Numbered from the stretch's first letter, positions 3,001 to 57,228 are shown. The stretch is DNA of 64,000 bases from Chlorokybus atmophyticus (GCA_009103225.1 RHPI01003762.1:124001-188000); one strand, 5' to 3'. Program-made: numbers and translations. Notes: generated by a model from the letters alone, not told the origin.

Positions 3001-3505
3001 TCAATGATTTCAAACTACACAATAACAGGTAATTTGTGAGTCATGCATTACATATGTATACCTATATATATATTTAAGGGTATGTATACATACGGGTATG
3101 CAGGCCCATATGCATACACGATTAACATACCCCGGCAGCATAAGATGTGGCACAAGCGCCTCTTGTGCTATATACGCATGACATTGGCAAAGCAATACAC
3201 GCAACCAATTAATTGTACACCACGGAGAGGTAGCCAACTTAATGAGACGCTTTGATTGCTAGAGCAATTGCTTGATGGAACAGAGGTCTTGAGTTAAATT
3301 CCTTGCGTCGATATCGTTGCGGCATAAAAGGTTGAGTTCACTTTTGCTAGCGTTTGCCGCCGCAAACGACCGAGCGGACATGTCATCGAGTCTAACTTCA
3401 ACTAGCTGAAAGGCCGTTTCATAAGACTCATAAAGACCCCTTGACTTCAAAGCATGAAGGCTCCATCTCTTAAAAATGTGGTTTAGAGCTGAGAATTAAT
3501 AACTA

Positions 3506-30321: not shown

Positions 30322-33300
30322 TGTAACAGCACCACCGTCGCCGGTGATGCCCCTTCAATCCACTACCCCAACACCCACACCGCCTATGACAAGCCTTTGA
30401 ATGGCGTAGCCGCCACTGAGCAGAGAACTGAAAGTCCCTCACATCAGTTTGATGTGACCTTTTATATCAAGAGTAGATCAAATATATACCTCTAGATAAT
30501 TAACTCGCCACTATACATCGACCCTACAGATAGGGTAGTTAGGAAATTTAGTGTGAGCCAATCACAGCTCAGATAAGGTACCTATCCATAAGGTACCTAT
30601 CGAAAGACACCTATCGCAATGTACCTAACGAGATAGTGACCACATTTTATCAAATGTGACACTAAATAGGCTTGAATAAGCGAATCTACACCTTTTGGGA
30701 CTTCTTAGAGCTATGATAAAGCATTATAGCCTTTAATAAGCGAGGAACCGTAGAAAAAAGGTATAAATAAGCATATTTAGATACTTATTCATACAGAATG
30801 TGTTATTTAGGTAGCAATAATACCCCTATTATTATTGCTCCCGTTACATTCCCCCCCACTTAGCTTTTCAACGTCCTCGTTGAACTCAAGTTGATCAGGC
30901 TTGATTTCGAGTAATTGTAACCACTGAAATAGCAGGAAAGGACAGGGTGGTAATGAAACTGCACTGCCAGTCTGTCATAAAAGCAAGCCCACAGTTTATG
31001 GGACAGGACGTGAATCCCAATAAGCTCGAAGCAACTCGCGGCAGTGCGTAAGATGCCTATCGGGCTCCCAACTGTTATGTTCTGGGCCATACCCTTTTCA
31101 TTTCACTAAATACCGAGTTACGCGTCCTCAACTATTTAGCTTATGGTTCAATATAGCTTCCACCTCGTATTCGAGCTCGCTGTCCACCTCAACTGGCGGT
31201 GGTGGAGGCTGTGTTCTACCGTCTGAGCGGTAAGGTTTCAACAAGTTCACATGGAACACGTTGTGTATTCGCACACTTGGGGGCAATTGCAGTCTATAAG
31301 CGTGCGTACCAACTGTATCAGTGATAGCGAAAGGACCCAACCATCGGGGCAACAACTTGCGAGCACCCGTACCTTTGATGGTTATGTTCTTTGCGTTAAG
31401 CAAAACTTTATCGCCGACATCGAAAGTGGCCATTCTTCGATGTGTATTAGCTTTTTGCCTGTCCTGTGCTTTTGACAGACACAGCTTGGCTCGAGCCAAA
31501 GTTTTTGCACATCAGTGGCAAATTCCTTTGCCGCTGGTACGGTCAGGGCATTGTGAGGTACACGCAATGACGCTGGTGTGTTCAGGCGAATCCCATAATT
31601 CAAGAAAAATGGGGTTTCCTTTACACTTTCCAGCCACGCGTTGTTCACAGCGAAGGTGCCATTGGCAAGTACCTGTCCCAATCAGCATTATTAGGAGCCA
31701 CATAGTGGCGAAGCATTTCTTTCAGTATTTGATTTGCTCGGTCAGTTTGTCCGTCCGTTTGCGAGTGGAAAGCAGTCGACATGCTTTGTTTTACCCCAAC
31801 AATACACTGACTTCTCTCCAAAACTTGGAGACAAACCGAGGATCGCAATCTGTGATAAGTTCACGCGGTACACCGTGAACTCGAAAGGCCGTGGACATAG
31901 ATTAATGTGCCAAGTCCCGTGCACTCGCAGTTGTGCAACACGGGGCAAAATGCACCATTTTGGTTAAACGGTCGACAAAAACCACAATAGCAGTGTATTT
32001 GGCTGCTGTTTCAGGTAGGTCAGTCATTAGATCCATACTGACACTATCCCATATTTGTTCTGGAAATGCCAATGGTTTAAGCAATCCCGCTTGTTTTTGT
32101 TGTAGTGGCTTATTACGTTGACACACGTCACATGTGCGAACATATTGATCCACATCAGCTGACATTGACGGCCACCAGTATAACTGTTGCACAGCTTTAA
32201 GTGCTTTGTTTTCCCCAATGCCCAGCATACGGCGGATCATGCACTGAATGTAAGCATTGCTTACGCAAGTCGCCCGAGTTGGGAATTGCCAACTGCTCCC
32301 CTTTATACCACAGATTGCTAACAGCAGTAAGCTGTTGCAAGTTGGTTTGACTGCTAAACCAATCATCTGAGTTATAACCTGTGGACACTTTCTTTAAGAA
32401 AGGATCTTCAGGCTGTTGTACATTACGTACTTCGAGAGCGCGTAAGTGGCAAAAGAGCAGGGCTACGACTTAGTGGATCCGCCACATTGGTGCGACCCAG
32501 ACGGTATTGCCAAGTGAAAGTGAAACGAGAAATAAATTTATTCCACCTAGCTTGCCGCCTCGACAGATTTTGTTGCGCTTGAAAGAATGTGAGCGGGTTG
32601 TGATCAGTAATCACTGAAACTCCACACCTTCCAAGTAGCAACGCCATGTGCGCAGGGCGTGCAGCACCCCGAGCAATTCCTGCTCAGTGGTTGTGTAATT
32701 ACGTTCAGCAGGAATGAACTTTCTGCTTTCATATGCACATGGTCTGTCATACTGTAGAAGGACTGCCCCACACCCAATGGTGGAAGCATCACTGATTACC
32801 ACAGAAGGCTTGGTGTGGTCGGGGGAGGCTAACACAGGGGCTTGTGTTAATGCATCTTTAATGCGTGTAAAAGCAACCTCGTGTGCCTCCGTCCACACAA
32901 ATTTAACATCTTTTCTCAGTAAAGATGTTAAAGGATTTGCCATGCTAGAATATGCTCGCACGAACTTGCAAAAATAATTGGCTAGCCCCAAGAAAGCACG
33001 TAACTGATGTACATCCTTGGGTGGTGGCCAATCCTTCACCGCACACACCTTTTGAGGATCTGGTTTCAATCCTTCTTTGCCAATCACATGCCATAAAAAG
33101 GGTAGTTCATCCTTGCAAAGTTGCATTTGGACAGGTTAGCATAGAATTTGTGTTCGCGTAACTTAGCTAAAACCAATTCCACATGCATGTGATGGTCCTC
33201 CCGGGTTTTGCTGAACACAATAACGTCTAGGTATACCAGTACAAACTTGTATAATTCATTAGCAAATACCGCGTTCGTTGTTGACTGAAATGTAGCCGGT

Positions 33301-36300
33301 GCATTTGTTAACCCAAATGGTAACAACACTTTATACTCAAAGTGTCCCAGTGGGGTGCGAAATGCAGTGTTTTTTTATATCCGACGGGTGGATTTTAGTT
33401 TGATGATAACCATTGGTCACATCCAGTGTGCTAAACACTGTTGCACCTGACAGCTTATCAAACAAATCATCAATCCGAGGCAAAGGGTATCTGTTTTTCA
33501 TTGTTATCTTATTCAACGCACGGTAATCAATACACATGCGTAGCTTGCCAATCTTTTTAGGCACATACAAAATTGGTGCACAAAAAGGAGATATGCTCTT
33601 TGTTATTAAACCTTTGTCCAATAACTCTTTGAGCTGTTTTTCCTTTTCCACGTGTTCTAAGGGACTTAGCCTATAGATAGGCCGCCAAGGTGGCTTTGCC
33701 CCCTCTTCCAACGGAATGGTATGATGTATGTTTCTATCAGGAGGCAACTCCGGGAGTTCATCCTGAAATACATCTGCGTATTGTTCCGTAAGTGATTGCA
33801 CCACAGGGCCAGATACGGCCTGTTCAATAGGTGTCTCTTCCTGTCGTATGTGCATCAAATATACTTCCGCACGTTTGCGCATGCAACGTTTCATTTGCAT
33901 AGCATAGAGGAGCGGAACATTGTCGCGAGCAACACGTGCGAGTACAAGTGCGATTAACGTCACCTTACGTTTACCCTTACGAAGGGTGCACGTATTTGCT
34001 CGAGAGTCCAATTGCAAACCTGCTTCGGTGTGCCACTGTTCACTCAAAACAACATCCACCCCGGGGATACCTGTATCCACCACAATAAAAGTTGGTCGAG
34101 TCCTGTGGCTGTAAATCAAAAAACGCCCCTTCACCTCCCCAATTGCATTAAGGGTGGAATCAGCAGCACGCACATACAACGTGACTGGTGTGAAAGGTTT
34201 GTTATTACGTTTCACCCAAGCATGTTCAACAAAGTTATGGTTTGCACCAGTATCAATCAATGCTGTACATGGTGTACCCATAAGTTGACTCTCAAATCTC
34301 CATTTGAGTGGCACTGAGTGACCATCAAATGTAGCTAATGTCGGAGTGCCGTGATTGGTAGCAGGCTTGATAAAGATCACTTGCAACGGTGAAGCTCCTG
34401 TATCCTTGCGTGAGAGTTGCATAATTAGTTCTCCCCCTTTCAACAATCGCGACCATGGGCCATAATGTCGAGGGATAATTACTCATGCAGTGACAGCATG
34501 TTGTAATTGCAACTCGTGTAAGTGCTTAACAGCAGCTACTAATTCAGAGAATGGAACATTGATTAAAACACAACCGTTTGCATTTGTAAACACAGGTGGT
34601 GTGCTCATATCAGTCAATACATCTGATACATCACAAAGAGAGGAAACTTTATCAAGAAGTACAGAGTTTTTAAAGTCGTTCTGCTCGACTAAGCTACCAA
34701 CCACGGACAATTTCTATTTCTTGTCCCTCTGCTGCTTGGCCATCTTTGGTGGATTTGGCCGCGTTGCATTTTTGCGTGAGAGCGCTTCATACTGTCCACA
34801 GCAGCAACCATCTGCATCAACATTGGTAAAACCATCGAGGCCCACTCTTGCAAACTCGCGGGGTTGACGGCCACATGCTGCACGAGATCTGTGTCCAAGC
34901 CACGCCTGAACATATCCAGCTGATCAGCATCACTGATGGGTAGTTTGCCAGCATTGATCTTGCTGACAAACGACTGAAAATCCTGGGTATACTGCTAAAC
35001 CGGACGCCCGTTTTGACGCAGGTTGTGCAGCTGGTTGCGAGCAACCTGGGCAGGATCTGCGCCACCATAGCGCTGCTGCATTAAAGAGCACAAATGATTC
35101 ACTTCCCGCCCGAGGTTCGTATCCATTTGCTTACGGCGGTACCACTCTGCCAGAGCTTCGTTTGCGATCAGCAACTCAGCTACACGCAACTTCCCCTCCT
35201 CAGAAATGTGAAGGGAGTTGACATAGTGTTTCAGCTTTACGAGCCAGTCGAAAATTGCCGCTTGTTTGTTGGGAACAAACCCGGCAGGTCGAGCAAGCGC
35301 CTATATAGGTGGACCACTATCAGAGCGTTGAAGGCGCTCGATCATGTTCAGAACACGTTTTTCTTCACCCGTCGATCCCTCCCAATCTTGCCCCATAAAG
35401 GTGGTGAGCTTTAAGATCTTTTCCGCCACATGAAAGAGGAAGTTGATGAGCGAGACAATTGCCTCATCAGGCTCCTCATCATAGGTGCCAAGAAAGTGGT
35501 CCATCAACTCCTGTTTTGTGAAGCGAATGGAGATTTCATGCTGCACAAATGATGGTGGTGGTGGTGGCCCTTCTGGTTCCACCAAGCCATCCACATCTTT
35601 AGCAGCATGAGACTCATCAGGTGCATCATCCGGGTTGGAAATATCCTCCATGGATGGAAATTCCTCCTCATGGGATAATTGCTCTTTTTTGCGAGCTTTC
35701 CCCCTTTGAGGTGGGCACCGAGTTCTCTTCCATTTGTTTGCAAAACAGGCAAAATGGAATGGTGAGAACCTCACCAATGGACCAGGTTCAACGAGAAGAC
35801 CAAAATGACCCCAAGTTAAAAAAGTCCCAAACAGAGTCCAAACCAGTCTTCAAACAGGAAAGGTTGGATCTGGAGTGTCACCAAACAGAACACGTTTGAA
35901 TGGGACCAGAATGTCCTAACCCTGTGTTGTCCTCAACCAAGTCCCAATCTCCAGGCCGAAGCAAGAGGGGAAGGGTTTCAGACTAACAGTGTTTGGGAGC
36001 AGAATGTCCTAGAACTTCCCCAAAACTGTCCTTACCAAGTCCCAATCTCCAGGCCGACGCTAGAGGGGGAGGGTTTGAGAATAGTTTGGTTCGGAACTTG
36101 CGGACCCGGGTCAAGCGACCTGGAAAAGCAGCTGGCAGGTCACAGGTACGTCACAGGCATGCAACAGGCAAGCCGTACAGTGACCAACTGTGACATGCAC
36201 TGGCAAGCACAATGACATGCAATCACCGCATACAATGATAGGCAATCACTGCAAAAAAAGTGCACAAAGAGTGACAAGCAGTGATGGCACACTAGCAAGC

Positions 36301-38111: not shown

Positions 38112-38804
38112 CAACGACGTCGCATTATTACACAATGACGATCCAGGGACTGAGGGACTGACGGGTACCTGACCCTGCCTGACCTAACGGATTGGTCCAT
38201 GAAGGGACTTATAGGACGGCCGGTGCTACTACTCATCAACATATAATAACGGCCAGCGGTCGGCCGATAGCTACACGCGATTAAAACCTGCCTGCGATGA
38301 TTAAAACATGACGTCAACGCATCATTAAGTGACGGCCAATCGCTGGTTGTCTATTTTGCTCGATAGCGACCTATCTAGCATAACAGACTGCCACCTTGCA
38401 GTCATTTTTCGCGACGGTCGACCGCCAGTCGTATCATAATCATCTTACCGTATGCGCGGCGGCTTGCCTACTATGGCAAGCCAGTCACTGTCAATCCTCA
38501 TTCCATGACCTGCCCGCTTGTCAATAAGTGACGGCAAAACACCGGTCGTCCGTTGGTGCGGTGGCGACCTACCGACTATGACAATCAAGTGACCGCCCGT
38601 CATTTATTGACGGCGAGCAATGCGGAACAATGGTACATGCAACTATCGTACCATACAAATGGTACGAAAATCCCATTATTACAATAGCACCATCGCACCA
38701 TTTTCAGGGTACGATGGTGTCATTGTGACAACGTGTTTGAATCATTTGGGTTGCCCAAGGTTTAAATGCTCTATGGCTTCAAGCAAGTTGAACAGTTGAG
38801 TTGT

Positions 38805-39401
38805 TGTCAAACCTATCGCCCAAGCATGCCAGTCATCATCAGGCATGCCTACAGCGAGACCCTCGCCCCGCTTACCAGCATGGCAACCCGCGCGCGTCTC
38901 TGACCAGTAGCTAGGTCATGTCTCGAGAGTAGCTCGTGACCATAGCCTACATAGGCACCGCGCGTAGCTGTTCAGTTGTGAGTTCAGTTATAAGTCAGGT
39001 CCTATATCGAGTGGGAATTTCCTGTGAAAATAGCCTCGATATGACCGTTAGCTTATGTTCTGGACAGTCATGAGTTGACTTGTATAAGTAGGCACAGTGT
39101 TCACCGGATCAGCTGGTGACACTGTAAGTGAGAAAGCTAAGAGCTTGTGAAGCGACTTGAACTACGAAACACACCGTCCTGGTTCCCAAGAATCCCCTCA
39201 TCGTGTGAGAGCCTGTGCATGTTCTTGTGCACTGCGCTTGTCCGTGCTGTGAGCTTTGTGTACTTGGTCACGATGTGCTTGTTGGCATCAGTCAGGGCAT
39301 AGCATCCACGTGTTGCTTGTTCATTCACCTCACTTAACAGTGTAATTTCTCTTCCACTCACGCAAAGAACTGTGTAAACAGCACTACCTATCGTAGTGGC
39401 T
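38805..39401 (+). repeat. R1 repeat, first copy (contains putative promoter)
   Basis: Matches 49024-49620 with roughly a dozen mismatches by eye. Confidence 0.95.
39083..39129 (+). promoter_or_regulatory. putative TATA box and transcription start, with sequence complementary to the primer site
   Basis: TATAAGTA at 39083 followed 32 nt later by GGTGACACTGTAAGT; the same spacing and sequence occur in the diverged element B (reverse strand, about 54532-54578). Confidence 0.6.
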
Positions 39402-39620
39402 TGTTGACTTACAGTGTCACCCTCTTTGCTCAAGTAAGTGTAGTTGCAGGCTGTACAACAGCATCGCAATCTGTAGTTGTACACATCACAGTGCAGTGTT
39501 GTCACCGTCATCGCATAGCGCGCACAAGCGCTAGTGTGTTGGGTGATAGCAGCACTGGAGATCCCATTGTAGAGCACAAACACTCTACCCTTCATCCACT
39601 TTCACCATCGCATCAGCTGT

Positions 39621-42600
39621 ATGAGCAGGCCCACCCCTTTCTCGCCAATAGAAGAAGGGGACCTCAACAGCTGGAGCCCAACCTCCAACCTTACCTACGA
39701 GCGCGCAAGTGAAGGGAGCGATTACCGTAGCAGCAGAGGCTCACGCCCCGTCTCCGGCTTCACCTCCTCTCACTCCACTCCTCGTCAACGAGCATCTCCA
39801 CCACCGTCGGACAGTGACGACGAAGAGATGGAGCCTTTCAGCTCAACTAACTCCCTACGCTTCTCCGGACGCCCTGGCACCACCTCACTTGACGAGTTCA
39901 TCATCAAGTTCCACTCCAAGATGCGGCAGCAGACCCTCAAGAGCAAGGACTGGACAGATGAGGTATCGTTTCATGTGTCCGCTTAATACCTTAATCACGA
40001 AGCACATAATGTGTGGAAGTCCGCCGCTGAGTTGCACAGGATTGATGGCTATGGCGAGTTGGCCAGCACAATAGCCGCCACATCACTGCACAGCCCATCG
40101 GTTACTGTCCCTGTAGCAGCGGCCCCGCCCACTTCAGTCACGGGTCTCACTCTAGCTGCAGCCATGGAGAAGGCAGAGAATGAAGAAGTTGAGGTGGTAG
40201 TGGCCTCATTGACTCCTGCAGAGATCGAAAGCAAGAAGGCCGAGCGCCGGATCAGGATACTCAACCGCACCGCTGCCATCATCAGGGAGCAACAAGAGGA
40301 GCAGCAAGCTGCAGCATTGGAGATGGGTACGCCCCTTCTACCAACACCGAACTCGCGTGCTCCAGCGGGAGGCAGTGTTTTCACCCTCGGTTCAGTGGCA
40401 TTGCGTGCACCCGCGCTCACGGTGGGCGCGGCCATGTCGAACTCCCCGTCGAAGGACCTCTACGCCGCACTCCGGCGCACCTTCCCACCTCAAACCAACA
40501 GTAAGGTGGAGGAGTTGAGGTGTTTTCGACGGAAGCCCCACGAGGACCCTCTCCGACTGTATTCACGGTTGGAAGGGTTGCTTAAAGACACTGACTACAA
40601 GATCGTCAGTGAGGAGGCGGCAGCAGTGGTGTATGTGGCCGAGTTGGATCCCACCCTGAGTGAGTCAACGCGCCTGACGCTGAACTACAGCAGGCCCCTC
40701 GGCTACACCCTCAAGGAAGCTTTCGAGACTGCACAAGCCATCCATAAGCGTGCAGTGTATGAGAAAGCGGTGCTGGACACCAACCGCAGTGCCTCACGGC
40801 CTGTGGCAGGCACAAGTGCGGAGCCTCTTCGGCGGGACCGCAGCCGCGAGCCGCAAGGCATCCATTACAAGGATAAACGGTCAGCTCATGCTGCCCTTGT
40901 GGCTCCAGTGCTGTGCCACCGGTGTGGTCGACATGGCCACTACCAAAAAGAGTGCACCGAAGATTACGGCAACCTTGTGTGCGACCACTGCCACAAGACG
41001 GGACACTTGGAGACAGTATGCTGGCTCAAATTCTCTGAGCTGCGGCCCTCTACTGGCTACAACCACGGCAACAACGCTGTTGGCTACCGCGGCAACAACG
41101 GGGGCTACAACAACAGCAACCACGCTGGCGGCTACAACAACAGCAACAACGCTGGTGGTCGCAACAACGGCAACAACGCTGGTGGCCACAGCCCCAACAA
41201 CAACAACAACGCTGGCGCCCGCAAGGAAGAAGCTGGCTATAAAGGAAAAAACCGCCCTCCACAGCACAAAGGACTTGAGGGACGTCCTCGCGCTGGAGCT
41301 GCTGCTGTAAAGGCACCAACTAATCCATTGGCTATTGACCAAGTGGCAGCCCTGATGGCGCGCGTGGCACAGCTAGAGGAGAACAAGGAGCAGGACTATC
41401 AAGCATGCTATGCTGCTAGGTGGGCACTGATGGCACCGAAACGGGATAGGGACACTCCCACGCCGTCACGCGTACAACCATCCAGACGGGCGCGCAGGGA
41501 AGCTGGCGCGTCGTCAACAGCGGCATCGTCGGACGCCACAAGTGGTGCTGCCTCGGCAGCCACAACCACCGCTGGGACGACGCCGTCGACGACACCGTCG
41601 GCGTCCACACCGACCACGACAGCAGGTGTCAGCACCCTTGGCACCACGCTGTCCCCGGTGATGGGGAGCACCCACGCCGCAACAACCATGGTCGTTGCGT
41701 TCGTAAGTGGTGAATCCACCACTCCTGCCTCCATCGAAGCGCCCACATCAACCGCAACTGCTGCCACCCTCACAGCCGCCACCTCAGTAACGACGACTGC
41801 TGCAGGTGCCACCACCATCGCCTCCAGTAGTGCTGCCATACCCACTGCACCACTTCTTGAGGGACGAACGGCACCGCCACCAGCGTTGGACGTCACACAG
41901 CAAGTGCCACGCGGGCCACAAACAGAGCGCGCCTGGGTGTCGGTTCTACGCAACGTGGAACCCACCACCATTGCGTACGGACCAGGGGGGCAACGCACCA
42001 CGCGCGTGGCACGCGATGATCGCATCTTGTCCCTACCACCTCCAGAGTACTACACGCTGCCGGAACCCACACAACAACAGCTGGAGGGTGAAATCCTCGC
42101 CGGCACTGCATCAGAGATGAGGGATCGTCTGTTTGGGGTCACCTACCGACGACCTGCGGTATTCGAGCTGGCCATCCAGTTGTTCCTGGCGTTACACGCA
42201 CGATTGCAGAACGCACCCAGTCAAACGCAGCAACCCATGCCCGCTCAACAGATCAACTTGGAGCCCTCACCACTGGACCCACTCGGCCTCCAGCGACACA
42301 AACTGCAAGACCTCGTGGTCACCATGTCTGACATCGCGCTGGGCGCTGATCCCGCTCTCGGAGGGCTCACTCCAGGCAGTCGTCAAGAGCGTTTCTCTGC
42401 ACTCGAACAGGCCCATCGTTATCGAATGGACCAAGCTGCTCAAGTGAACGCGCGCCGACAAGCGTACGAAGCAGCACACACCGTTATCGTACCGACCGGA
42501 GCGCCAGCAAATGTCGCCAGCGCCTCTACGGCGCTGACCACAGCGTACTCCACGGCAACCGCCATCGAGCAGCCGGGACACGCAACTGTTGCAGACTAAG

Positions 42601-45600
42601 CGAGGGCGTTGGCGCAACAATTGAGGGGGGTAATCGCCCCGCTGCTGCCTCTTTTGGTCGAAGACATGCCTGAGGATCAACGCGATGCAGGGCGAGGGTA
42701 CCTCACCCCGCAAGGGGACACCACACAGCGAGGAGGAGCTGGTATGGTGGGGGAGCAACAACTCTGTACCGCACTCATCCGGCAAGCAGTCATGTTGCAC
42801 AGGCCTGAGGGCAACACATTAAGACAGATGATGGGGATGCAAGAAGGCAGCGCCGCTCGAGCCCGTCTCGTGACATGGCTCGTTGCCAATCACCCTGCTG
42901 TCCCCATGTTTGCCTTTGGCAACCGAGCATCATGGTTGGGGGCATTTGTTCGTTCGCTGCGACAAGCATACGACGAGGCTGCCACCACAGCCCCGGACAC
43001 GCTGGAGGGAGTGCAAGAGGCAATAATGCGGCTGCCAGGGGTGGAAGCCGCACGGCAACGGCGGCGCATCGCCATTGCTCATGAGCTACACGCACAGCAG
43101 ACTGACCTCCAGCGCACCCTACGCGCTCGCGCCATGACCGTGCTTGATGTGGGAGTGGTACAAGGAAGGTGGGATGCCTACATGGCAGGGATCTTGCGAG
43201 TCCCCACCATCACTCACGACATGCGGCGACAGCTACTACGCGCCGTATACCTGCAGCCTATGCCTCAATATCATCATTAGACCGACACGGTCACCGAGCC
43301 CACGGCCACGTGGGAAGGGACATTGGTCGGAGAAGCGGCTCATGCTGTTCGATGGACGTACGCCGCGGAGCAAGCTGAACGCGAGGCAGGCCCACAAACA
43401 CCGGGTCCGCCAGGGTTTCCTCCACAACCATTGGGTACACCCGCGGGCATGATTCCAGCTTCGCAGAGGCGTCATCCACCTGCGCCGCCACCACAACCAG
43501 CGCCGGAACCTCCAGCACCGAGGCCCCCCCGTGTCTACCAACCACCACGACAAGGTCGGTTCGGCAGAGGGAGAGGGCAAGGAGGGGGTTCTCCGGACCC
43601 AGCAGGCAGAGGAGCTCTGGCTGCCATGCGCTCAGCACCGCCAGCTGAGACAACTGAGTCAGAGGTACAGACACCTCGTATGAAGAGGCTGCGTATCGAC
43701 GCCAATGCTGCCATGGTGGCCAACCAAGGCAAGCACGTTACCATCAACGATCTGGCACCCAAGCGAGTAATGTTGGACACCGGAGCACAGCCTGTCATCA
43801 TTGGGCGCTTCCTCGCGCGGTCCCTAGGCATAACCAGCTCCGACTTGATGCCTTGCCCGTATGTGTTAGACACTGCCACAGGTAGCCGAGATAAGGTGAT
43901 GGGAGTCACCAGGGAGGCCTTTTGCATTCGGTTGACAGGGCTGGACCCAACCCACACGACCGAGTTCGTCCAGCAATGTGTGGTCACCAATGCCGGCTCC
44001 TTCGACTTTCTGCTTGGGCAGGACTTCAACTTCCCTGTGGGCATGGGCCTCGACTACCGGACAGAGCGAGCGTGGTTTCGGCCACATTGGGATGAGGATG
44101 ACGGAGAGGTACAGGGTTTCCTGCCTCTCGAGTTGGTCTCGCGCACGCGCGCCCAACGCAAAATGGTTGCCATGGCCACACGCAGCCACGCCCGCACCCG
44201 GAAGGCTGTAATGGCCACATACGACGGCGCTCGGACGCAAGTCGCTGCTGGTGCCACGGCCCCGTGTGGAACCGGCGACTCCTCTCCCATCTCGTACAAC
44301 GAGGAGCAGGAGGATGCCACCATGGAAGTAGCATTACAAGACCCAGCTGAACGGCGCTGGCGCGCACAGGTGGACGCACACATCTTGCTCAGCCATCCAC
44401 TGATCACCACGCGCTTCCCAAACTACCGAAGCCACGTCAAGGTGCAGGACCGCCATATGGTGGCCACCGGAGTGGTGGAGTTCCACACCTTTCGCAGGCA
44501 ACAGGGCATCACACTGTTGGAGCTGTTTGGAGGCATTGGCAGTGGTCTTGCTGCGGTTCTCAACACAGGCGTGAAGGTTGTCCGATACTATTATTGCGAC
44601 CCAGACCCACACGCGCAAACGGTCCTCAAGCACCACTTACGCCAACTGCACGCCAGATATCCACGTCAACTACCCCTCTCGGCGTTGCAAGGCAGCCTCA
44701 AAGCATTGCCACAGGACATCCGGCTGATCACTGAAGATCACCTACTGTCCCTCGGCAACGTCGACCTGTTAATAGCTGGATGGGAATGTCAAGGGCACTC
44801 CAGGGCAGGCAAGGGGCAAGGCCTCGAAAACCCTCGCTCCGGGCTGTTCTGGGAGCTGATGAGAATCATCCACCTCCTTCAACACCACTAGATCTCCAGA
44901 CCCCTGGGGTACGTCATCGAAAATGTGCATTCAGAGGACGACAAGCGTCCGCACGTGGCCTCCAGCTACCAACAAGTTTGCTCCATTCTGGGGCACCCAC
45001 TCAAGGTGAACGCGGCACGACATGGCTCGCGCGCACATCGTGTACGTGCCAAACGGACAAACTTGGCCACCGTGGAGGAACTCGTGACCGCCGAATACAC
45101 ACGCAGCGCTCGGCCGCGCAACATGCTGGTCGACAACATCCTTGACCCCGGCCGCACAGCACAACCTGTCCTGCGTCATGACCACAACCACTTCTACCCG
45201 TGCAATCAGCCCGGTCAGCCCCGTCGCGCCCTCCCAACATTGGTGTTCTACCCGGGCTGCTACGCATTTCGGAACGGTGGTGACGGGATGGTGTTCGATA
45301 CAACCACCAACAGGCTGGAAGAACCCAACGCACGCGAACGTGAACGCGCCATGGGATTCTTCCCCAACAGCATCACGGGCTCATCGCTGACGGACAGTCA
45401 GCAATGCCAGCTGCTTGGTCGCGCCATGGACCAAAACAGCATGGTATGGCTGCTGGAGCTGAGCTTCGCGTTGCAGGACCGCCACGTGTCCTTCGAGGAT
45501 CTCGAACACTTGGCTGGGGGGTGGGCTGATCGCGTGGCCGACACCAAGGCAGCTCACACAGCCCTCGAGGTGATCCATTTGGAGGAGCAAGCAGCAGTGA

Positions 45601-48600
45601 CATGGCATTGACCCGTTGGCCACAGAAGACACTCGCGAGAAGCTGGAGGCTCTCCTCAACCAATGGAGGAGCCAATTCAGCTTCAATGTGAAGGAATTGG
45701 GTACATGCTCAGTGTACCAGATGGACATCGAGCTGGTGGACACTGAGCCGGTGTTCCGACGACAATACAGGCTCTCCAAGTTGGAAGAAGACTTGGTGGA
45801 ACAGAGATGTAAGGCGCTGCTGGATGCAGGCCTTATCGAAGAGTCCACATCGGACTTCGCAGCAGCAACCGTCATGCCACTGAAGAAGGATTCAGCAGGC
45901 AACTGGACAGAGCGACGCATGTGCGGCGACTATCGCCCCCTCAACAAGACCAAGCAAGACCGGTACCCCATGCCCACAGCAGAGGGTATTTTTTATGATG
46001 TGGGAGACTGCACAGTCTTCAGCATCCTGGACATGCGTCAGGGGTACAACCAAATCGCCATCAAGGACGAGGACAAGCACAAGACCTCCTTCTGGGGCAA
46101 CCGACAGTTGTACCAATGGAAGGTAATGCCGTTCGGGCTGAAGAATGCCCCCGCCAAGTTTCAACGCGTCATGGACAAAGCCTTGAAGGGGCTGGACTGC
46201 GCGCGGTGCTACATCGATGACATCCTCATCTTCAGCCGCAGCAACGAGGAGCATCTTCAACACATCGAAGCGGTGCTAAAACGACTCAAGGGAGTGGGGA
46301 TGACCGTACACCCCGACAAGTGTATCTTCTTCACCCACAAGGTGCCATACTTAGGGCACATGATTGTGCCCCATGGTGTGTATGTGCAGCAGGCAAAAGT
46401 AGAGGCTCTGGCAGCTATCCCTGCCCCGACAGACCTCACACGCCTGCGCGCTTTCTTGAGACTTGCCAACTACTATCGCCGGTTCGTGAAGGACTTCGCA
46501 AAGATCGCAAGGCCCCTCAACGAGCTACTGAAGAAGGAGGTGGACTTCGCGTGGAAGGAGCCGCAACAGCAGGCCTTCGAGGAGCCGAAGAGCAGACTCA
46601 CCAGCGCTCCCATCCTTCAACGTCCGGACTACGCCAAGCCTTTCATCCTTCACACCGACTGGAGCAAGCTGGGGATGGGAGCGGTGCTGGTGCAGCACGA
46701 TGAGAACAAGAAGGAGCGGGTGGTGTCATACGCCAGCCGAAGCAACAACAGCGCCGAGGCCAACTACAGCAGCTACGAAGGGGAGTGCCTCGCTGCAGTG
46801 TGGAGTGTGGGCCATCTCCTTCTTCCAACTTTTCCTCTTTGGTCGACAGTTCCAACTGATCACCGATCATCAGCCCCTCAAGTGGCTGATGACCAACCAA
46901 CATCTGACAGGGAAACTTGCTCGATGGGCCATGCTGTTACAGGAATACGACTTCGAGATTGACCACCGCGCTGGCCTCACCAACTAAGACGCCGATGGCC
47001 TCAGTCGCAACCCTCACCTCAGCACCAACGACGCAACTGGAGCGCGGCATGAGCTCATCTCGGCAGCAACAGCCCCCACCATGGCAGCCGTGTTTGCTGC
47101 TGCCGCGTTGCGCTGAGGGCGCAAGACCAACACCACGGCCTCAGTAGCGGTAGAGGCGATTCCTGCCCTTGAGTCTACCGACCCTGCGGCAACCACACCC
47201 TTGGAAGACGCCCACGCAGCCGACATTGATGTCGGTGACACAGAGCTGGCGCCCACCGACACCAGGCAGGCCATATGGCATGACAAGCCGTCACTCTCCT
47301 TCCTTCAAAGTGGCCATCTTCCCTCCGGCATGAGCGTTCGAGAGAAGGACCGGGTCAACCAACGCACCCGTCACTATCGATGGGCAGGTGACAATCTGTA
47401 TCGCCGCTTCCACGACGAAGACAAGGAAGTGCTGACACCAGTCACGCGCGCGGGCATCATCACTTCCCTCCACACTGAGCTTGGACACTTCGGTGTCAAG
47501 CGTACAGTCAGCCTGGTGAGGGCACAATATTGGTGGTATGGATTCACAAAACAGGTGCGAAGGTTCGTCAGCCACTGCCAGCAGTGTGACATGGTGCGCG
47601 CCAGCCTCAACACGCGTAGCGCCACCTTGCACCCACTTCCCATCTCCGGTCTCTTTTACCGATGGGGACTCGACATCTTGGGGGACTTGGCACCCTCGGC
47701 ACGTGGCAACCGTTACATCCTGATCATGATCGAGCACTTCTCCAAATGGGTGGAGCTGGTGCCATTGCCCGACAAGAGCAGCAGGGGGGTGTCTCAAGCC
47801 TTCCTCTCTCACGTTCTCAGCCGTTCGGCAGCTGCGCCGAGGTCATCACTGACCAAGGTACTGAGTTCAGAGGGGAATTCGACACCCTCTTGGACAAATG
47901 TTACATCGACCACCGCCGTACCTCGCGTGATCACCCTCAAGCCGACGGCCTCGCCGAACGTACAGTACAGACCATCAAGAAGGCACTCCGCAAATACGTG
48001 CTGGAGTACGAGAAGAACACTTGGGATGACCACCTCCCGTGGGTGGCCCTTGGATATCAATTGTCAAAGCAGGCGGCTCTGCGGGAGTACAGCCCGTACT
48101 ACCTGCTGTTCGGGCGACCACCAATGCTCCCCTTCCGTGCGCAGCAGGAGGTGCATCGCGTCGTGAACAACCTCGACGACCCTGACTGGATGCACCACGA
48201 CATCACCACGCGCGCCGCGCTTTTCGAGCGCACCGTCCCCATGGCCTTCAACAACCTGCGCATCGCGCAGCATCGCGACACGCTGCGCTACGAGCGTGTA
48301 CGCAGCGGCTTCTACAAGGAGCGCCAACGGCGGTTCCAAGCGGGGGACTTTGCCTATCGCATGGCAGCCACCAAAGACACACTTGACACCTCCGTAGGCC
48401 GCACCGTCTACAAGGTACTCAAAGTGTACCCCACAGGGGTGCTGGACCTCCTTGGTCAGAATAGAGAGAGGTTGAAGGACAATATGGTGAACTGTGCGCC
48501 ATGTCACCTTCCTTACGTGGCCGGCTTCGGGCGTATCCAGCACCCTCGTCCCGCGCGCAGCACACGCTGTGAACACTGCGGCAGCGCTGGCGACGACGCA

Positions 48601-48741
48601 CTCATGATGCTCTGCGATGGCTGCAACCAAGGCCTGCATTGCTACTGCCTGGAGCCACCTTTGGACACGATACACCTATGGAAGAATATTGGTGCGACGA
48701 CTGCCGTACCAACGGCCCTCCTTACTTGCGTTAGCAGCTGA
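39621..48741 (+). pseudogene. Gag-(unknown domain)-protease-DNMT-RT-RNaseH-integrase-PHD polyprotein, disrupted
   Basis: Zn knuckles CHRCGRHGHYQKEC and CDHCHKTGHLETVC; RVMLDTGAQP (PR); DNMT motifs; RMCGDYRPLN, PFGLKNAPAKFQ, CYIDDILIF (RT); HTDWSKLGMG (RH); HTELGH..CQQC, WGLDILG, VITDQG, GLAERT (IN); C-terminal PHD. 40011-45611 is one frame with three stops (42597, 43278, 44889); later frameshifts follow. Confidence 0.92.
44500..45480 (+). pseudogene. C5 cytosine DNA methyltransferase domain inside the polyprotein (element A)
   Basis: Motif I ITLLELFGGIGSG; IV VDLLIAGWECQGHSRAG; VI YVIENV; VIII HRVR; IX/X ERERAMGF...QLLGRAM; one internal stop at 44889. Confidence 0.88.
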
Positions 48742-48784
48742 GCTCTGGAGCTGGAACCTTCCCGAGAGCCCAAGGGGGGTGGCT

Positions 48785-49857
48785 TGTTGACGTTGTATGC
48801 TACAGCACAGCATGTTCTTAGGGAGAACACCGACTCCATCTGCCCGTACTACCCAGCAGCAGCACACCAGCTGCACGAAGCACTTGTCACCATGAGGGTG
48901 GAGGTCATCTTTCTGTTTTTGCTACGCGTTACACAGGTGGCGCAGCAGCATGTCCAGCACAGCATGGCTGTCCATGCAGCTGTCCGAGACAGCGTGACCC
49001 TCGACTCCCCTCGACCCGACAGCTGTCATGCTTATCGCCCAAGCATGCCAGTCATCATCGGGCATGCCTACAGCGAGACCCTCGCCCGGCTTACCAGCAT
49101 GGCAACCCGCGCGCGTCTCTGACCAGTAGGTAGGTCATGTCTCGAGAGTAGCTCGTGACCATAGCCTACATAGGCACCGCGCGTAGCTGTTCAGTTGTGA
49201 GTTCAGTTATAAGTCAGGTTCTATATCGAGTGGGAATTTCCTGTGGAAATAGCCTCGATATGACCGTTAGCTTATGTTCTGAACAGTCATGAGTTGACTT
49301 GTATAAGTAGGCACAGTGTTCACCGGATCAGCTGGTGACACTGTAAGTGAGAAAGCTAAGAGCTTGTGAAGCGACTTGAACTACGAAACACACCGTCCTG
49401 GTTTCCAAGAATCCCCTCATCGTGTGAGAGCCTGTGCATGTTCTTGTGCACTGTGCTTGTCCGTGCTGTGAGCTTTGTGTACTTGGTCGCGGTGTGCTTG
49501 TTGGCATCAGTCAGGGCATAGCATCCACGTGTTGCTTGTTCATTCACCTCACTTAACAGTGTAATTTCTCTTCCACTCACGCAAAGAACTGTGTAAACAG
49601 CACTACCTATCGTAGTGGCTTGTTGACGTTGTATGCTACAGCACAGCATGTTCTTAGGGAGAACACCGACTCCATCTGCCCGTACTACCCAGCAGCAGCA
49701 CACCAGCTGCACGAAGCACTTGTCACCATGAGGGTGGAGGTCATCTTTCTGTTTTTGCTACGCGTTACACAGGTGGCGCAGCAGCATATCCAGCACAGCA
49801 TGGCTGTCCATGCAGCTGTCCGAGTCAGCGTGACCCTCGACTCCCTCCGACCCGACA
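48785..49857 (+). repeat. 3-prime repeat block R2-GC-R1-R2 of element A
   Basis: R2 48785-49021, GC 49022-49023, R1 49024-49620, R2 49621-49857. Confidence 0.95.
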
Positions 49858-50732
49858 TTGTGCAGCGGCAGTGGCGGCGGTGATAGTGGCGGCGGCGGCA
49901 ACGGCTAACAGTAAGCAAGTTTGCTTGGTGCTGTAACGTTATGTTATGCGCAACAGCGCATGCAGCCTAACCGCCCTTCTAATCTAAGGGCGGCTAGGCC
50001 AGGCCAGGCCAGGCCAGGCTAGGCTAGGTCAGGCCAGGCGGCGGCGGTGGTATATGGCAAGCAACAACATGTGTATGTAAGTTGTCACACTGTGAGCATT
50101 GGTGTGGATGTTGTTGTTGATGGCGCTGATGTGATTGACTTGTGCTTGCAGGAGCGGCGGTGGACAAGGAGCGGCGGCGGAGGTGGAGCGCAGGAGCGGC
50201 AGCTTAGTATAGGACCTTGGATTAGGGTGGTAGTAGTAGTAGTAGTAGCAGCAGCAGTAGTAGCCGCTCACAGTAGTTCGTGTTGTAGCATAATACAAAT
50301 ACGACTTGCAACGCATGTAATATATTACTTTATGATTATATTGCATCATTGTTGACGACACTCGCGTGAGGTATTCAATCATGACTGAACGGTACCCAAC
50401 AGGTACCTTTGAAGGTACCCTTCAGTAACGACAGGTACCATGAGGTACCTGTCAGTTACAACTAATTAGTGTACAGTCGCCGGTACCCAACTATTAGATA
50501 CTGGTTAGTTACTTGTCAGTTAGGGTAAGTCCGTTTTGCTGGACTGATGGGTATCCTACAAGTACCTGTCAGTTAGAGTTAGTCCCTTTATGCAGACGAT
50601 CGTCAACGGATGGTAACGGCTGCTATGCTCAGGCCCTTGTATCGAGATCGCTAGCAGACTGAACAACAACAGTATGACTAGAGTATCCTCACATCCACGA
50701 CCGTCCTATATATTTAGTCGGCCGTCTGGGGT

Positions 50733-52688: not shown

Positions 52689-54809
52689 CTACAAGCCGTT
52701 GTTGCAAGAAGCTGCTACAAAGTTCTCCATGTGGAGAGTTTCAGTGCGTAACTTGCTCAGCCCATTGAGTTGCAGAGTTGAAACACTCTTCCAGACCATT
52801 GTCACCTGTGACAGCTCTGCATACATTGAACGAATTGGTCTGCTGCTGGTTTGCAGATATGAAATCAACGGTGTGTTGCACTTGTGAAGTTACATATATG
52901 TACGTCTCTGATGGGGATAAAAGGTCTGTCGCCAATGCTGGTATGCAGATCCAACTCTGCTTGCATCCACTCATTGTCACAATGATTACTATCAACAACC
53001 TCTGCTTCAGGTGTGCCATGTCTGCGCACATGCAGGTTTAGTATATTGCGCACATGTGCACAGTCTGTATCAAGCTGCACGCACGATACTCGTATTGTAC
53101 ATAACTACAGCAAGGGTTAGCTGCATGTATGTGCATTATGATACATCTATGCATGACAGACAAACATGCGCATTCGCGTCCATACATGCGCACTTGCGCA
53201 CTTGCGCATTGCTATCATACACATGACTACTTGCTAGCATGCCTGCCACTGTACTACGCAGCAGGCGTTGACTGACGGCATCAATCACTTCTGCAAAGCT
53301 AGGCGTGGCTGCTCTTGCATGGGGACATATCGACATATGCAGCCTGCTGGTTGTATTTAGCCGCCTTTGCAACCATAACCACCCTGATCGCCGCAACCGC
53401 AGCCACGACCGCGACCACATTAAGACTGGGTATTCCCCTCTTCTGTGATAGAGCGCATGCAAGCGCACAATTGCATTAACGTTGTGGTATAAGACAAACA
53501 TCCAGTGAGACTTGAAAGTATGCCCTGAGCTTAGCGAGGCTAGTTGAACTGCAAATGGATCCACAAGACAATCGCTGAGCATTATCATAATACAGGTCAT
53601 GCGCACATTGTGCAGCTTGATAACTAACAGGGGGCTGCATGTAACAGTCGAGGCCAAGTTTCATAATTTTAGGAATGTTTTTGGCCCATTTGTCGAGCAC
53701 CACGTTTTCATGACTTGTGGCAGATATCGGCGATTTATGAGTCTGCCGCGGATGTTGACCGGGGCCCCAGGACCAGTCCGGAAGGTGCCAGAAAACGGAT
53801 GGCCAGTCGAGAAGGGCTCGACCAGATTTCTTGAAGGGCATGGCGCCAAGTAGTCAAACTTGACCATATGAGCACCTAATCAGGAGATCTTTGGTGCGTA
53901 AGAAAGTATACTACAAGGTTCTTTGATGACATCTTAGCATCTGATTTTGTGTAGCACGGGAATCGTCTAGACAGTAGCATGTGCAGACTGGTAGGTATTG
54001 TCGTGCCTGCCATGGTCAAGGGCAACCTTGTCTCGGACAGGCTGCGGAGGAGTGCTAGTGTTGCACGCATGCTAGTGCCGTGCATTGCCTTGGAGTCATG
54101 TAAGCAAAAGACAACCCCCCAATCGTGGGCATAGGCTTGAAGATGAGCCTACGCGGTGTTCAGTGCAGTGGACGAGCCGCTGCCGCTCGCCACCTTTGGT
54201 TACAGACTGTGTCGTAGTGCACACAGTCAACAAGCCACTACGATAGGTAGTGCTGTGGACACAGTTCTTTGCATGAGTGGATAGAATGATGACACTGTTA
54301 AGTGAGGTGAATGAGTGTGCAACACGTGGTACAACACCCTGACTGATGAGACAACACACCACCGCCAAGCTCACAGCAATGACAGGCACAGCGCACAAGA
54401 GCATGCACCGTGTCTCACGCAGTAAGGGAATTCTTGGCAACCGGGACAGCGTGCTTCCAGTTCAAGTCGCTTCACAAGCTCTTTAGAAACAGAGTCTTTA
54501 CTTCTTAGTACTCCTAGTACTCACAGTACTCACTTACAGTGTCACCAGCCAGTCTGGTGACGTGACTTCCTACTTATACATGTCAAACTATGACTGTGCA
54601 GTGCCACGCGGGCACTAGGCCAACGGTCACATCGAGGCCTCATGCTATTTCGGAAATCTTTTAAGACTCGATATAGCACATGTGTTATTAACAGACTTAC
54701 AACTGATCAGCTACGCGCGGTCCCTACAGACAGGTCTATAAAGTAGCCCTAGCTACATGCTACATGGGAGGTACAGTAGCTAGCAGTAGGCTGGGGCTCG
54801 CGCGGTCTT

Positions 54810-56856
54810 TGTTGAAGGTATTACATGGGTGATGCTTGTATCCGGTCAGCTTGCCCTTCATACAGGAGTCGAGGGTCGAAGGTACCAGGAAGAAGCGCGT
54901 GGGCTCCAGACTTAGCAAGACGGTCGAGTCATGACGGACTCCGGACCAGGCTTCTTGGTAGAGCCTTGGGAGAAATCGCGTAGCTTTGTGGATACGTAAG
55001 CTTAGCAGGCGTGGCTTAGCTTGTTGAAAAGCTCTGGTTGTGAGCTAGACAGCGTAGCTTACAGAACAGCAATCCGCTGAGTATAGCGCACGCGGTGCTT
55101 GTCAATGTAGACGTGTGTAGAGACTGGGGGGGTATAAAGCCCAGACTTGTTGCAATGAAGAAGAGAGGTCACGATGTAGCATGTGTGCGGATGCTATGGC
55201 GGCAGTAGCAGTCATGCTCTTGTGTTGATGTTGTTGGCGTGTCACTTGCACGTGTGTATGTCAACAGGTTATGGGCCCACACATGCTTGTGTAGGTTGAT
55301 GGAGTGTGTTACAATTGTATGTGTAGCTGTAGTTGCTTTGTGGTAGTGTGGGGTTGTGAGGTCTGTGAGCAGAGAGGGCAACCAACCAAGGCCACCAGCA
55401 TGGGCAGCTTGAAGATTGCGATTGGACTACTGGACGTTGACGACTACAACACTTGGAGTGTGAAGATGGAGCTACTACTGGCCCATAAGGAGATGCGGAA
55501 GTACATGGACCAAGAGGAGGAGATGATGGAGATCTTCTGGTGACTGAAGAAGAGTACGTGAAGTACTTGGTAGAGGAGGCGTCCTTGATACGTGAGAGCT
55601 GAAGATGTCAGCTCGTGTTGCTGAGTGCGAGGAGTACTTGGTGGAGCGTGGTGAAGCGCTTTGAGGAATGCGAGAGGCAACCCGTGGTAAGCACGTTGAT
55701 GTGCTTGGTGGAAGGAAGGGGAGCAGATGGCAACCCTTGAGGTCGAGCACGGTGGAGTGTTTGATGAACCTTCCGAGAAGGGGAGCGAGGGCAGTCCTTG
55801 GTGAAGCACGGTAAAGTGCTTGGTACTTTGGTTGAAGCATGTGGAGTGCTTGGCTGAAGGTGCATGCGAGGAAGCGAGATGAGCATCCTGGAAGCGTGAT
55901 CGCTTGGAAGCTGGACATGGAGCATCCTGGAGGCATGAAGCTTGGAGGCTATACGCAGAAGCATGTGGACGTGGACATGAAGATGGCCATGGTGTGCGCA
56001 AGGTTGCTGCATTGACAAGGGTGGTTGAGGATGGAGTTGCAAGATACCACAAGGTCATGAGCAACAAGCAGGCACAAGTAGGTTGCGATTGTGGAGCCCG
56101 TGGGAGCTGCAAGTGGTGGAAAGCAAGTTGACTAGAGGAGTCATGGGCTGATACCTGAGGCGGAGGCACTGTCAATGAGGACAGATGCAGCGGGTGCATG
56201 AAGGCAACATGTATGTACAGCAAGGAGCAAGGTTGGTGGTCAACCATGAGGCTCGAGTTGCTGTGGAAGTGAATGACTTCAAGATCATCCATGAGAAGCA
56301 TGGAGGCGTGAGGAAAAAGGTGAAGGCTTGCGTGAGAGCAAGCGGTGTGTGTGAGTAATGCAGGAGCTGATGTTGAAGGACAAGCTGCCCGCGTGGGAGT
56401 GTTGAAGGTATTACATGGGTGATGCTTGTATCCGGTCAGCTTGCCCTTCATACAGGAGTCGAGGGTCGAAGGTACCAGAAAGAAGCGCGTGGGCTCCAGA
56501 CTTAGCAAGACGGTCGAGTCATGACGGACTCCGGACCAGGCTGCTTGGTAGAGCCTTGGGAGAAATCGCGTAGCTTTGTGGATACGTAAGCTTAGCAGGC
56601 GTGGCTTAGCTTGTTGGAAAGCTCTGGTTGTGAGCTAGACAGCGTAGCTTACAGAACAGCAATCCGCTGAGTATAGCGCACGCGGTGCTTGTTAATGTAG
56701 ACGTGTGTAGAGACTGGCGGGGTATAAAGCCCAGACTTGTTGCAATGAAGAAGAGAGGTCACGATGTAGCATGTGTGCGGATGCTATGGCGGCAGTAGCA
56801 GTCATGCTCTTGTGTTGATGTTGTTGGCGTGTCACTTGCACGTGTGTATGTCAACA
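54810..56856 (+). mobile_element. non-autonomous Ty1/Copia derivative nested in the R1 repeat of element B
   Basis: 457-bp LTRs (54810-55266, 56400-56856) TG..CA with about 5 mismatches; 5-bp TSD GTCTT; PBS GGTTATGGGCCC (copia-type half-tRNAiMet); gag-like start MGSLKIAIGLLDVDDYNTWSVKMELLL; no pol. Confidence 0.9.
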
Positions 56857-57228
56857 GTCTTCATGCTGGTAGCCCGGGCGTGGGGCTGGGTGTAGGCATG
56901 CTCGAGAAGGACTGGCATGCTAGGGTAGATGGCATGACAGCTGTCGTGCCTGCCATGGTCGAGGGCAACCTTGTCTCGGACAGGCTGCGGAGGAGTGCTA
57001 GTGTTGCACGCATGCTAGTGCCGTGCATTGCCTTGGAGTCATGTAAGCAAAAGACAACCCCCCAATCATGGGCATAGGCTTGAAGATGAGCCTACGTGGT
57101 GTTCAGTGCAGTGGACGAGCCGCTGCCGCTCGCCACCTTTGTGTACAGACTGTGTCGTAGTGCACACAGTCAACAAGCCCCCCCCCCCCTGAGATTCTGG
57201 GGTAGCCCTCTGCTCCAGAACTCAGTTC

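Follow-up and report, generated by a model that had tools for sequence, protein, structure and literature searches.

Within a 64,000-nucleotide stretch of the Chlorokybus atmophyticus genome (the window) lies a retroelement, E1 (positions 38805-49857), whose terminal repeats are permuted. Our preferred reading, to which we give slightly better than even credence, is that E1 is a degenerate copy from a green-lineage clade of Ty3/Gypsy elements that have a PHD finger after the integrase (the streptophyte members adding a Dnmt3-like methyltransferase between protease and reverse transcriptase), and that these elements integrate by joining the tips of their cDNA and cutting at a palindrome in the primer-proximal repeat. 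A little under even credence goes to the wider proposition, that the clade is ancient and that its cDNA is obligatorily end-joined (circular or relaxed-circular), the integrase acting on a pre-encoded internal junction and not on linear tips. New here are the conserved palindrome GACA-GC-TGTC, the predicted self-priming primer binding site (PBS) and target-site duplications in several lineages.

The two repeats of E1, called A and B here and R1 and R2 in an earlier sequence-only reading of the window, were defined by repeat searches and alignments (Table 1). The element does not have two identical long terminal repeats (LTRs) flanked by PBS and polypurine tract (PPT); its 5' end is A alone. 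Its repeats are instead split and direct, in the order A1-internal-B1-A2-B2, with a GC dinucleotide at 49022-49023 between B1 and A2. A1 and A2 are 97.8% identical over 604 nt, and B1 and B2 98.4% over 243 nt. The lengths first given for them, 597 and 237 bp, are slightly shorter because A ends and B begins with a shared 12-13 nt, (G)TGGCTTGTTGAC. This 12-mer has five matches in the window, solely at three borders of E1 and two of a second element, E2, where 0.5 would be expected by chance. E1 starts with TGTC and ends with GACA, i.e. it is of the TG...CA type. The permuted order, the TTGT duplication, the DDE integrase and the lack of a tyrosine recombinase, all claimed in the sequence-only reading, were confirmed by repeat alignments and Pfam.

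The window belongs to an assembly with gaps (its 433 N apparently form a single gap at ~3500-4000, as judged from open reading frames (ORFs) open in all six frames), and E1 is degenerate. Is its layout then a one-off, produced by rearrangement or misassembly from an ordinary element with A-B or B-A as its true LTR? This explanation is refuted, and we leave it practically no probability: the same order is found in E2, in liverwort, moss and Chlamydomonas chromosome-level assemblies, in Klebsormidium nitens and at 17 distinct metagenome sites, and no ordinary-ended copy was found. The genome-assembly relatives, reached through protein searches, are L003 (Calypogeia fissa), L005 (K. nitens), L008 (Chlamydomonas reinhardtii) and L010 (Sphagnum balticum); all four have the order A-genes-B-GC-A-B and each has its own 4-bp duplication. 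Including metagenome copies, 4-bp duplications are present in E1, L003, L005, L008, L010, L029, L065 and L077. A chance origin of the E1 layout is excluded because layout and duplication recur, at the predicted positions, in independent elements. Within a copy, the two As differ from each other about as much as the two Bs do (98.0% and 97.3% identity in L005, 99.3% and 100% in L003, and the values above for E1), as would be expected if one replication cycle regenerates both pairs.

Where does the repeat made by reverse transcription begin and end? A G-run PPT lies upstream of B in E2, L003, L005, L007, L008, L010 and L011, as it does in E1. On the other side, when A is searched together with the sequence that follows it, a pair of 12-19-nt arms forms the longest perfect inverted repeat in every element, and the downstream arm begins 0-3 nt before the end of A1 in five of five elements (E1, L003, L005, L008 and L010); comparable pairs in the collapsed contigs L001, L007 and L011 bring the relatives with this feature to seven besides E1. 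The arm sequences are unrelated between elements, so it is the pairing that is conserved and not the sequence, and such covarying complementarity points to self-priming of the Tf1 type. In E1 the upstream arm starts ~32 nt after the TATA box (39083). The TATA-bearing block TGTATAAGTAGG is conserved between E1 and E2, and the whole 3' half of A1 shows strong conservation with E2. The predicted leader RNA folds such that the minimum-energy and centroid structures both close on the arm duplex. A tRNA primer was considered and rejected: TGGCTTGTTGAC begins TGG but would need a tRNA acceptor stem starting UUGUUGA, and the relatives have no such motif. There are no tRNA genes in the window.

It follows from the positions of PPT and PBS that the redundant and unique 5' regions (R-U5) would be the 3' part of A, and the unique 3' region (U3) would be B, GC and the 5' part of A. 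By these landmarks the repeat generated by reverse transcription is B-GC-A, with boundaries offset from the ends of the integrated E1. This bears out the proposal of the sequence-only reading that the real LTR is R2-GC-R1: the PPT adjoins B in every relative, and the predicted self-priming PBS comes directly after A.

The B1/A2 junction of E1 is a 10-bp palindrome, GACAGCTGTC, and the motif CGACAGCTGTCATGC is identical in E1, E2, L001 and L003. E2 keeps both the palindrome and the 12-mer at the A/B border though its B is only ~45% conserved relative to that of E1. GACAGCTGTC is present too in L007, L008 and L011. In L005 the junction is a compensated variant, GGCA-GC-TGCC, in which both sides have changed (TGCC/GGCA versus TGTC/GACA), and because the change is compensated on both sides it argues that the symmetry itself is under selection. 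The L010 junction is degenerate (GACA-TC-TGTC). The GC centre is invariant across the clade, one old copy excepted.

The positions of PPT, PBS, palindrome, termini, duplications and tip-to-tip junction are read from the sequence; from them we infer a route, including its transcription start, poly(A) site, integrase cutting and mode of tip joining. Transcription would start ~30 nt after the TATA box of A1 and would probably stop close to where A2 ends. The initial 13-15 nt of the transcript would fold onto the complementary site just past A1 and prime the minus strand, as in Tf1, and plus-strand synthesis would start from the G-rich PPT just ahead of B1, giving a linear cDNA (B-GC-A)-PBS-genes-PPT-(B-GC-A). 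The integrase end sequences TGTC.../...GACA would not be at the tips of this cDNA; they would be abutted within each repeat as GACA-GC-TGTC. The inserted copy, A-PBS-genes-PPT-B-GC-A-B, would be the linear cDNA minus one GC, rotated, and the rotation would imply that the cDNA tips had been joined (the A2|B2 junction) and the primer-proximal palindrome cut after each CA. With staggered cuts after CA, each of the two ends would have a recessed CA-3'OH and a 2-nt 5' GC overhang, which would account for the loss of one GC. Recessed CA-3'OH ends with 2-nt 5' overhangs are the normal substrate for strand transfer. Joining could come before cutting, in a circle or relaxed circle, or after strand transfer, as repair of two free tips. 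In the E1/E2 lineage the 12-nt direct repeat at the tips would permit joining by annealing; it resembles the short terminal redundancies that aid circularisation of hepadnavirus DNA. The A2/B2 junction, which runs from the U5 end to the U3 start, is precise in all elements examined.

The sequence-only reading had proposed a two-LTR circle opened inside one LTR. The part of this that stands is that the tips must be joined; the part that does not is the symmetry of the circle. A covalently closed circle with tandem B-GC-A repeats, opened at either palindrome, would give the correct order, the loss of exactly one GC and the A|B junction, and for foamy virus and HIV-1 it is documented that integrase can cleave a palindromic junction of two LTRs (PMC1180852, PMC1905944). 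The two palindromes of a two-repeat circle have the same sequence context for hundreds of bases, and such a circle predicts the mirror form A-B-GC-A-genes-B (R1-R2-R1-internal-R2) in half of single-cut events. None of 19 5' ends, of which 15 are distinct sites in metagenomes and the others those of E1, L003, L005 and L008, has that form, and the standard form was seen at the 3' ends of 17 distinct metagenome sites and of six window and genome elements (E1, E2, L003, L005, L008 and L010). We therefore consider the symmetric circle quite improbable. Since the mirror form is absent though the palindromes are equivalent, the joined intermediate must be asymmetric or the integrase must be positioned on one repeat. 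Integration by tip joining would then include a directional step, in which the PPT-proximal palindrome alone would never be the opening site. The asymmetry might arise in a relaxed circle closed by a template jump. The tips might also be joined only after the primer-proximal palindrome had been cut and both ends inserted, or the integrase might load on plus-strand strong-stop DNA, where the palindrome would first become duplex and which would later form the primer-proximal repeat.

The metagenome counts come from a scan of JGI metagenomes with an alignment of the reverse transcriptase (RT), which gave 80 loci, mostly moss-like contigs. The census used repeat geometry and A and B probes, with insertion sites de-duplicated by flank; an earlier, strict automatic census demanding an intact palindrome returned no matches because the moss copies are old. 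B-GC-A-B was found on the 3' side at the 17 distinct sites, and a single A on the 5' side at the 15. Complete metagenome copies have duplications TTTA (L065) and TGAC (L077), and two older ones (L053 and L023) match at three of four positions. No copy with ordinary ends (B-A...B-A or A-B...A-B) occurs among the window, genome-assembly and metagenome elements; had most copies been of that kind, as the sequence-only reading recognized, its proposal would have failed. All complete copies are permuted.

The short copies are a separate matter. At 13 distinct metagenome sites (e.g. L020, L035, L038, L045, L059, L072 and L029) an A-genes-B copy ends at the CA of B and is followed by unrelated flank. 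Several of the sites recur in assemblies made independently (L030/L039, L033/L037, L045/L048 and L089/L090), and one copy (L029:4469-14010), with A at its 5' end, has a perfect duplication, CATC. Short copies may have arisen by deletion between B1 and B2, or they may be primary products (both palindromes used, or a one-repeat circle opened). Could A-genes-B even be the main product, with the integrase using the start of A in the left repeat and the end of B in the right one, on linear cDNA or on a one-LTR circle with its lone palindrome, and with the long copies a rarer side route? Such use of the ends would amount to long-range 3' processing. End joining would then be unnecessary, and the 13 sites, the independent assemblies and the L029 duplication all fit. 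However, a short copy is without the 3' R for first strand transfer, so it should be non-replicating and cannot be the replicating form; all six window and genome-assembly elements are of the long form; and deletion between B1 and B2, direct repeats only ~300-600 bp apart, explains short copies equally well. Moreover, 86 de novo insertions of a PHD-bearing Chlamydomonas relative, Gypsy-7a_cRei, were reported as full-length, with one 15.4-kb structure (PMC9940879). We judge this alternative unlikely.

Tip joining followed by a cut at the primer-proximal palindrome is the reading we retain, and several points besides the short copies weigh against it. End joining is deduced from integrated copies, and both the transcription start and the poly(A) site are predicted. 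In a closed two-LTR circle the two palindromes would be equivalent, so strict directionality calls for an extra asymmetry. The 12-nt tip redundancy is limited to E1 and E2, so that homology-driven joining is not general; the overlap was rejected as a general joining device, being missing in L003, L005, L010 and L011, in which A and B overlap by 0-1 nt. Finally, the 49-nt B2 of L008 demands an additional deletion step. At the 3' side of this Chlamydomonas element (L008:17594-20334, PPT GGCTGGGGGGGGGAG at ~17594-17605) B1 is ~2.15 kb, and in B2 the opening 14 nt of B1 are linked to its final 27 nt by 9 other nt, despite A1 and A2 being 100% identical. Our guess is that the short B2 came from a deletion tolerated during tip joining, the interior of B2 being unneeded in the next cycle. 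L008 also has a second palindrome, ATGACAGCTGTCAT, 112 bp upstream of the main one.

The coding region of E1 has the Ty3/Gypsy domain order protease (PR)-RT-RNase H (RH)-integrase (IN), and its best relatives are Gypsy polyproteins. With the methyltransferase (DNMT) and PHD finger the order is PR-DNMT-RT-RH-IN-PHD, which is common to E1, L003, L005, L010 and L011. The E1 copy is degenerate, with three in-frame stops (42597, 43278 and 44889) and about three frameshifts (near 45611-45616, 46960-47201 and 47821). Its integrase core is in two pieces with one frameshift between them, and the D, D and E positions align with the rve domain of an intact relative, P0023. E1 thus combines TG...CA termini with a DDE integrase and a short duplication of its target site. 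These features bear on another possible explanation, that E1 is a tyrosine-recombinase retrotransposon of the DIRS, PAT or Ngaro type, or was mobilised in trans by one. The order A1-genes-B1-A2-B2 is indeed the hallmark of PAT and Ngaro, but no recombinase domain was found in any frame (no Phage_integrase match by Pfam in ORFs of at least 150-200 aa on both strands of E1), gag-PR-DNMT-RT-RH-IN-PHD takes up the coding space, the DDE integrase is conserved in intact relatives, and every complete copy examined has the TG...CA termini and 4-bp duplications that recombinase elements are without. We consider this explanation refuted and give it next to no weight. In gag, an imperfect 24-27-nt tandem repeat (window 41060-41201) encodes an Asn/Gly-rich low-complexity stretch (GYNNSN...).

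Table 1. Features of E1, E2 and their genome-assembly relatives (window coordinates for E1 and E2; locus coordinates for relatives)
Feature	Position	Strand	Remarks
E1 element	38805-49857	+	Order A1, gag-PR-DNMT-RT-RH-IN-PHD, G-rich PPT, B1, GC, A2, B2
Left target-site duplication TTGT	38801-38804	+	Matches 49858-49861
A1	38805-39408	+	Sole repeat at 5' end; begins TGTCA; carries promoter, R, U5
TATA box TATAAG	39083-39088	+	In A1; same motif in A2 at 49302-49307
Predicted transcript 5' end/self-primer arm GGTGACACTGTAAGT	39115-39129	+	Perfect 15-nt complement of 39407-39421
Predicted self-priming PBS ACTTACAGTGTCACC	39407-39421	+	At A1 boundary
gag-pol reading frame, degenerate	40011-48741	+	Pfam, BLASTP to P0023, tblastn
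gag with CCHC zinc knuckle	40011-42599	+	Pfam
Aspartyl protease	~43737-44027	+	Pfam Asp_protease_2
C5 DNA methyltransferase	~44496-45455	+	PF00145 match; tblastn; between PR and RT
RT-RNase H	45616-46962	+	Pfam RVT_1, RT_RNaseH, RT_RNaseH_2
DDE integrase	47273-48504	+	Integrase_H2C2 (Pfam); core by alignment to P0023
PHD finger	48568-48669	+	Pfam; after integrase
PPT AAGGGGGG	48772-48779	+	Adjoins B1 on its upstream side
B1, inner B copy	48779/48780-49021	+	First 12 nt TGGCTTGTTGAC; terminates CGACA
Palindrome GACA-GC-TGTC	49018-49027	+	B1/A2 junction; abutted integrase end sequences, 2-nt spacer 49022-49023
A2	49024-49627	+	Second A copy
B2, outer B copy	49615/49616-49857	+	Shares 12-mer with A2 end; CGACA is element 3' terminus
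Right target-site duplication TTGT	49858-49861	+	Matches 38801-38804
12-mer TGGCTTGTTGAC in E1	39397-39408, 48780-48791, 49616-49627		At both tips of reverse-transcribed repeat
12-mer TGGCTTGTTGAC in E2	54226-54237, 57169-57180		At both tips of reverse-transcribed repeat
E2	53999-64000	-	74% identical to E1; 5' part beyond window end; 3' end like E1
E2 3' end	B 57179-56942; A 56939-54237; B 54236-53999	-	G-run PPT before first B; GC between B and A; nested insertion inside A
L003, Calypogeia fissa (liverwort)			Duplication CACC; junction CGACAGCTGTCATGC
L003 arms	6581-6594 (upstream), 6732-6745 (downstream)
L005, Klebsormidium nitens	Scaffold DF237474.1		Duplication TCTT; junction GGCA-GC-TGCC
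L005 arms	711-729 (upstream), 1015-1033 (downstream)
L008, Chlamydomonas reinhardtii	Chromosome 9		Duplication TCCG; 18-bp palindrome; A copies 100% identical
L008 arms	8614-8631 (upstream), 8788-8805 (downstream)
L010, Sphagnum balticum (moss)			Duplication TGAA; junction GACA-TC-TGTC
L010 arms	3701-3715 (upstream), 3828-3842 (downstream)

No same-family copy of E1 was found: protein searches, among them one with the protease-DNMT ORF, and a DNA comparison with all loci gave no match above ~50% protein identity or 72% DNA identity. A representative search with RT gave a ranking dominated by multi-copy chimeric gene models. The closest relative, at 47% protein identity, is L011 (L011:1-18357, the ENA metagenome contig ctg159469_5x_c), in which an 8,262-bp unit is repeated head to tail 2.2 times with 99.8% identity; each unit comprises the coding region and one B-GC-A repeat, with no A|B junction. 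L011 could be a tandem array, a concatemer or a one-repeat circle read several times; it was set aside as evidence for a two-repeat junction, on which, lacking the A|B junction, it has no bearing. L007 (with a 141-nt terminal overlap) and L001 (in which pol runs through one repeat into gag) were likewise not accepted as circles and are read as assembly collapse of repeats. Clean terminal repeats were not found in Closterium L009 or K. nitens L006, which are uninformative.

A C5 methyltransferase between protease and RT is found beyond Klebsormidium, in L003, L010, L009 (Closterium, a desmid), L011 and the moss-like metagenome loci L012-L091. L007 and, weakly, Chlamydomonas L008 have instead a methyltransferase-like segment between RNase H and integrase. 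Downstream of the K. nitens element, at a distance of a few hundred bases, is a second methyltransferase fragment in inverted orientation (L005:15295-16025, minus strand), which suggests a neighbouring or nested copy.

The insertion in the A repeat of E2 (window 54810-56857, minus strand) is a 2,048-bp LTR-type element whose 458-bp LTRs are ordinary and 98.9% identical; its ends are TGTTGA...TCAACA, and its duplication, AAGAC, is of 5 bp. The element has one 354-aa ORF with no Pfam match and looks like a small non-autonomous LTR element of conventional architecture in the same genome. Elsewhere in the window there is a fragment of an unrelated retroelement (32626-34482, minus strand) with protease and RT, 33% identical to the RT query. 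A GC-rich block at 19487-23029 has several ORFs of 311-387 aa with no Pfam match; the best matches of one of them (20774-21937, minus strand) are ~50% identical, anonymous metagenome proteins.

The repeat order has been in print before. The sequence-only reading knew of no described family like E1, and here it has to be amended: de Mendoza et al. (2018, Nat Commun 9:1341, PMC5890265) noted "DIRS-like repeats" (A-coding-B-A-B) for the Klebsormidium family KnitGypsy-Dnmt3 in the legend of their Fig. 4c. E1 resembles that family both in its Gypsy polyprotein with a Dnmt3-type methyltransferase and in its DIRS-like repeat order, and K. nitens L005 has the same domain order and A-genes-B-A-B layout as E1. 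RT-coding DNA is ~68-70% identical between E1 and K. nitens, with no high-identity match on the two scaffolds compared; because of this level of identity, and because they have no repeat sequence in common, E1 probably belongs to another family than L005. Craig et al. (2022, PMC9940879) recorded that the left LTR of Gypsy-7a_cRei is without the last 8 bp of the right LTR. Neither paper analyses duplications, primer site, polypurine tract or junction, or gives a mechanism, and the mechanism is unpublished. Our literature search on split direct repeats with integrase or circular intermediates found nothing further, and no other paper was found that uses the KnitGypsy name.

By the accepted rule for LTR retrotransposons and retroviruses, integrase works at both tips of linear cDNA, and the LTR edges set by PBS and PPT are also the edges of the inserted element. 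In the E1 clade (C. atmophyticus, K. nitens, liverwort, moss, Chlamydomonas and the moss-like metagenome contigs) a fixed rotation separates the LTR edges from those of the insert. The old question of end-joined cDNA as a true integration precursor is thereby reopened by a natural system, and the offset offers a concrete explanation for the existence of split direct repeats. It also matters for annotation, as standard LTR finders will mis-call such elements, their ages and their solo LTRs. The active Chlamydomonas relative makes the idea bench-testable.

How does E1 compare with known systems? In priming it resembles Tf1 and the sushi elements, whose PBS is complementary to the first 11-15 nt of their own transcript and which use no tRNA; E1 has this complementarity, its transcript start being predicted. 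Self-priming of Tf1 was reportedly described by Levin in 1995 and by Lin and Levin in 1997. The likeness is one of priming arrangement; Tf1 and sushi elements have ordinary LTRs and a chromodomain whereas the E1 clade has split repeats and a PHD finger. The plant Tcn1 and TAR lineages, too, are predicted self-primers (Neumann et al. 2019, PMC6317226). At the junction, E1 is comparable to the two-LTR circles of foamy virus and HIV-1, whose palindromic LTR-LTR junction can be cut by integrase (Delelis et al. 2005, 2007; PMC1180852, PMC1905944); there too an abutted CA...TG palindrome can be cleaved to processed ends. The retroviral palindrome, however, arises by ligation of the tips and belongs to a side route, whereas that of E1 is encoded in the repeat and has a 2-nt spacer, and the ligated A|B tips would not be the integrase site.

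In repeat order E1 is like PAT, Ngaro and TOC1, all of which have A1-internal-B1-A2-B2. In such elements the internal copy of the end-to-end junction (B1A2) is believed to enable a sub-genomic transcript to restore the complete element via an end-joined intermediate. What sets them apart from E1 is their tyrosine recombinase and the absence of a target duplication; E1 has TG...CA ends and a 4-bp duplication together with a DDE integrase, a PPT and a predicted self-priming site. If the proposed route is correct, it would be a mechanistic link between integrase elements and split-repeat tyrosine-recombinase elements. In IS3- and IS911-type bacterial insertion sequences a DDE enzyme of the same superfamily acts on a junction of abutted left and right ends with a spacer of a few bp, in a circular intermediate. 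These are DNA transposons without reverse transcription and the likeness is an analogy of mechanism only, but if the route holds, the E1 clade would be the eukaryotic retroelement counterpart of IS3-type circle-junction transposition.

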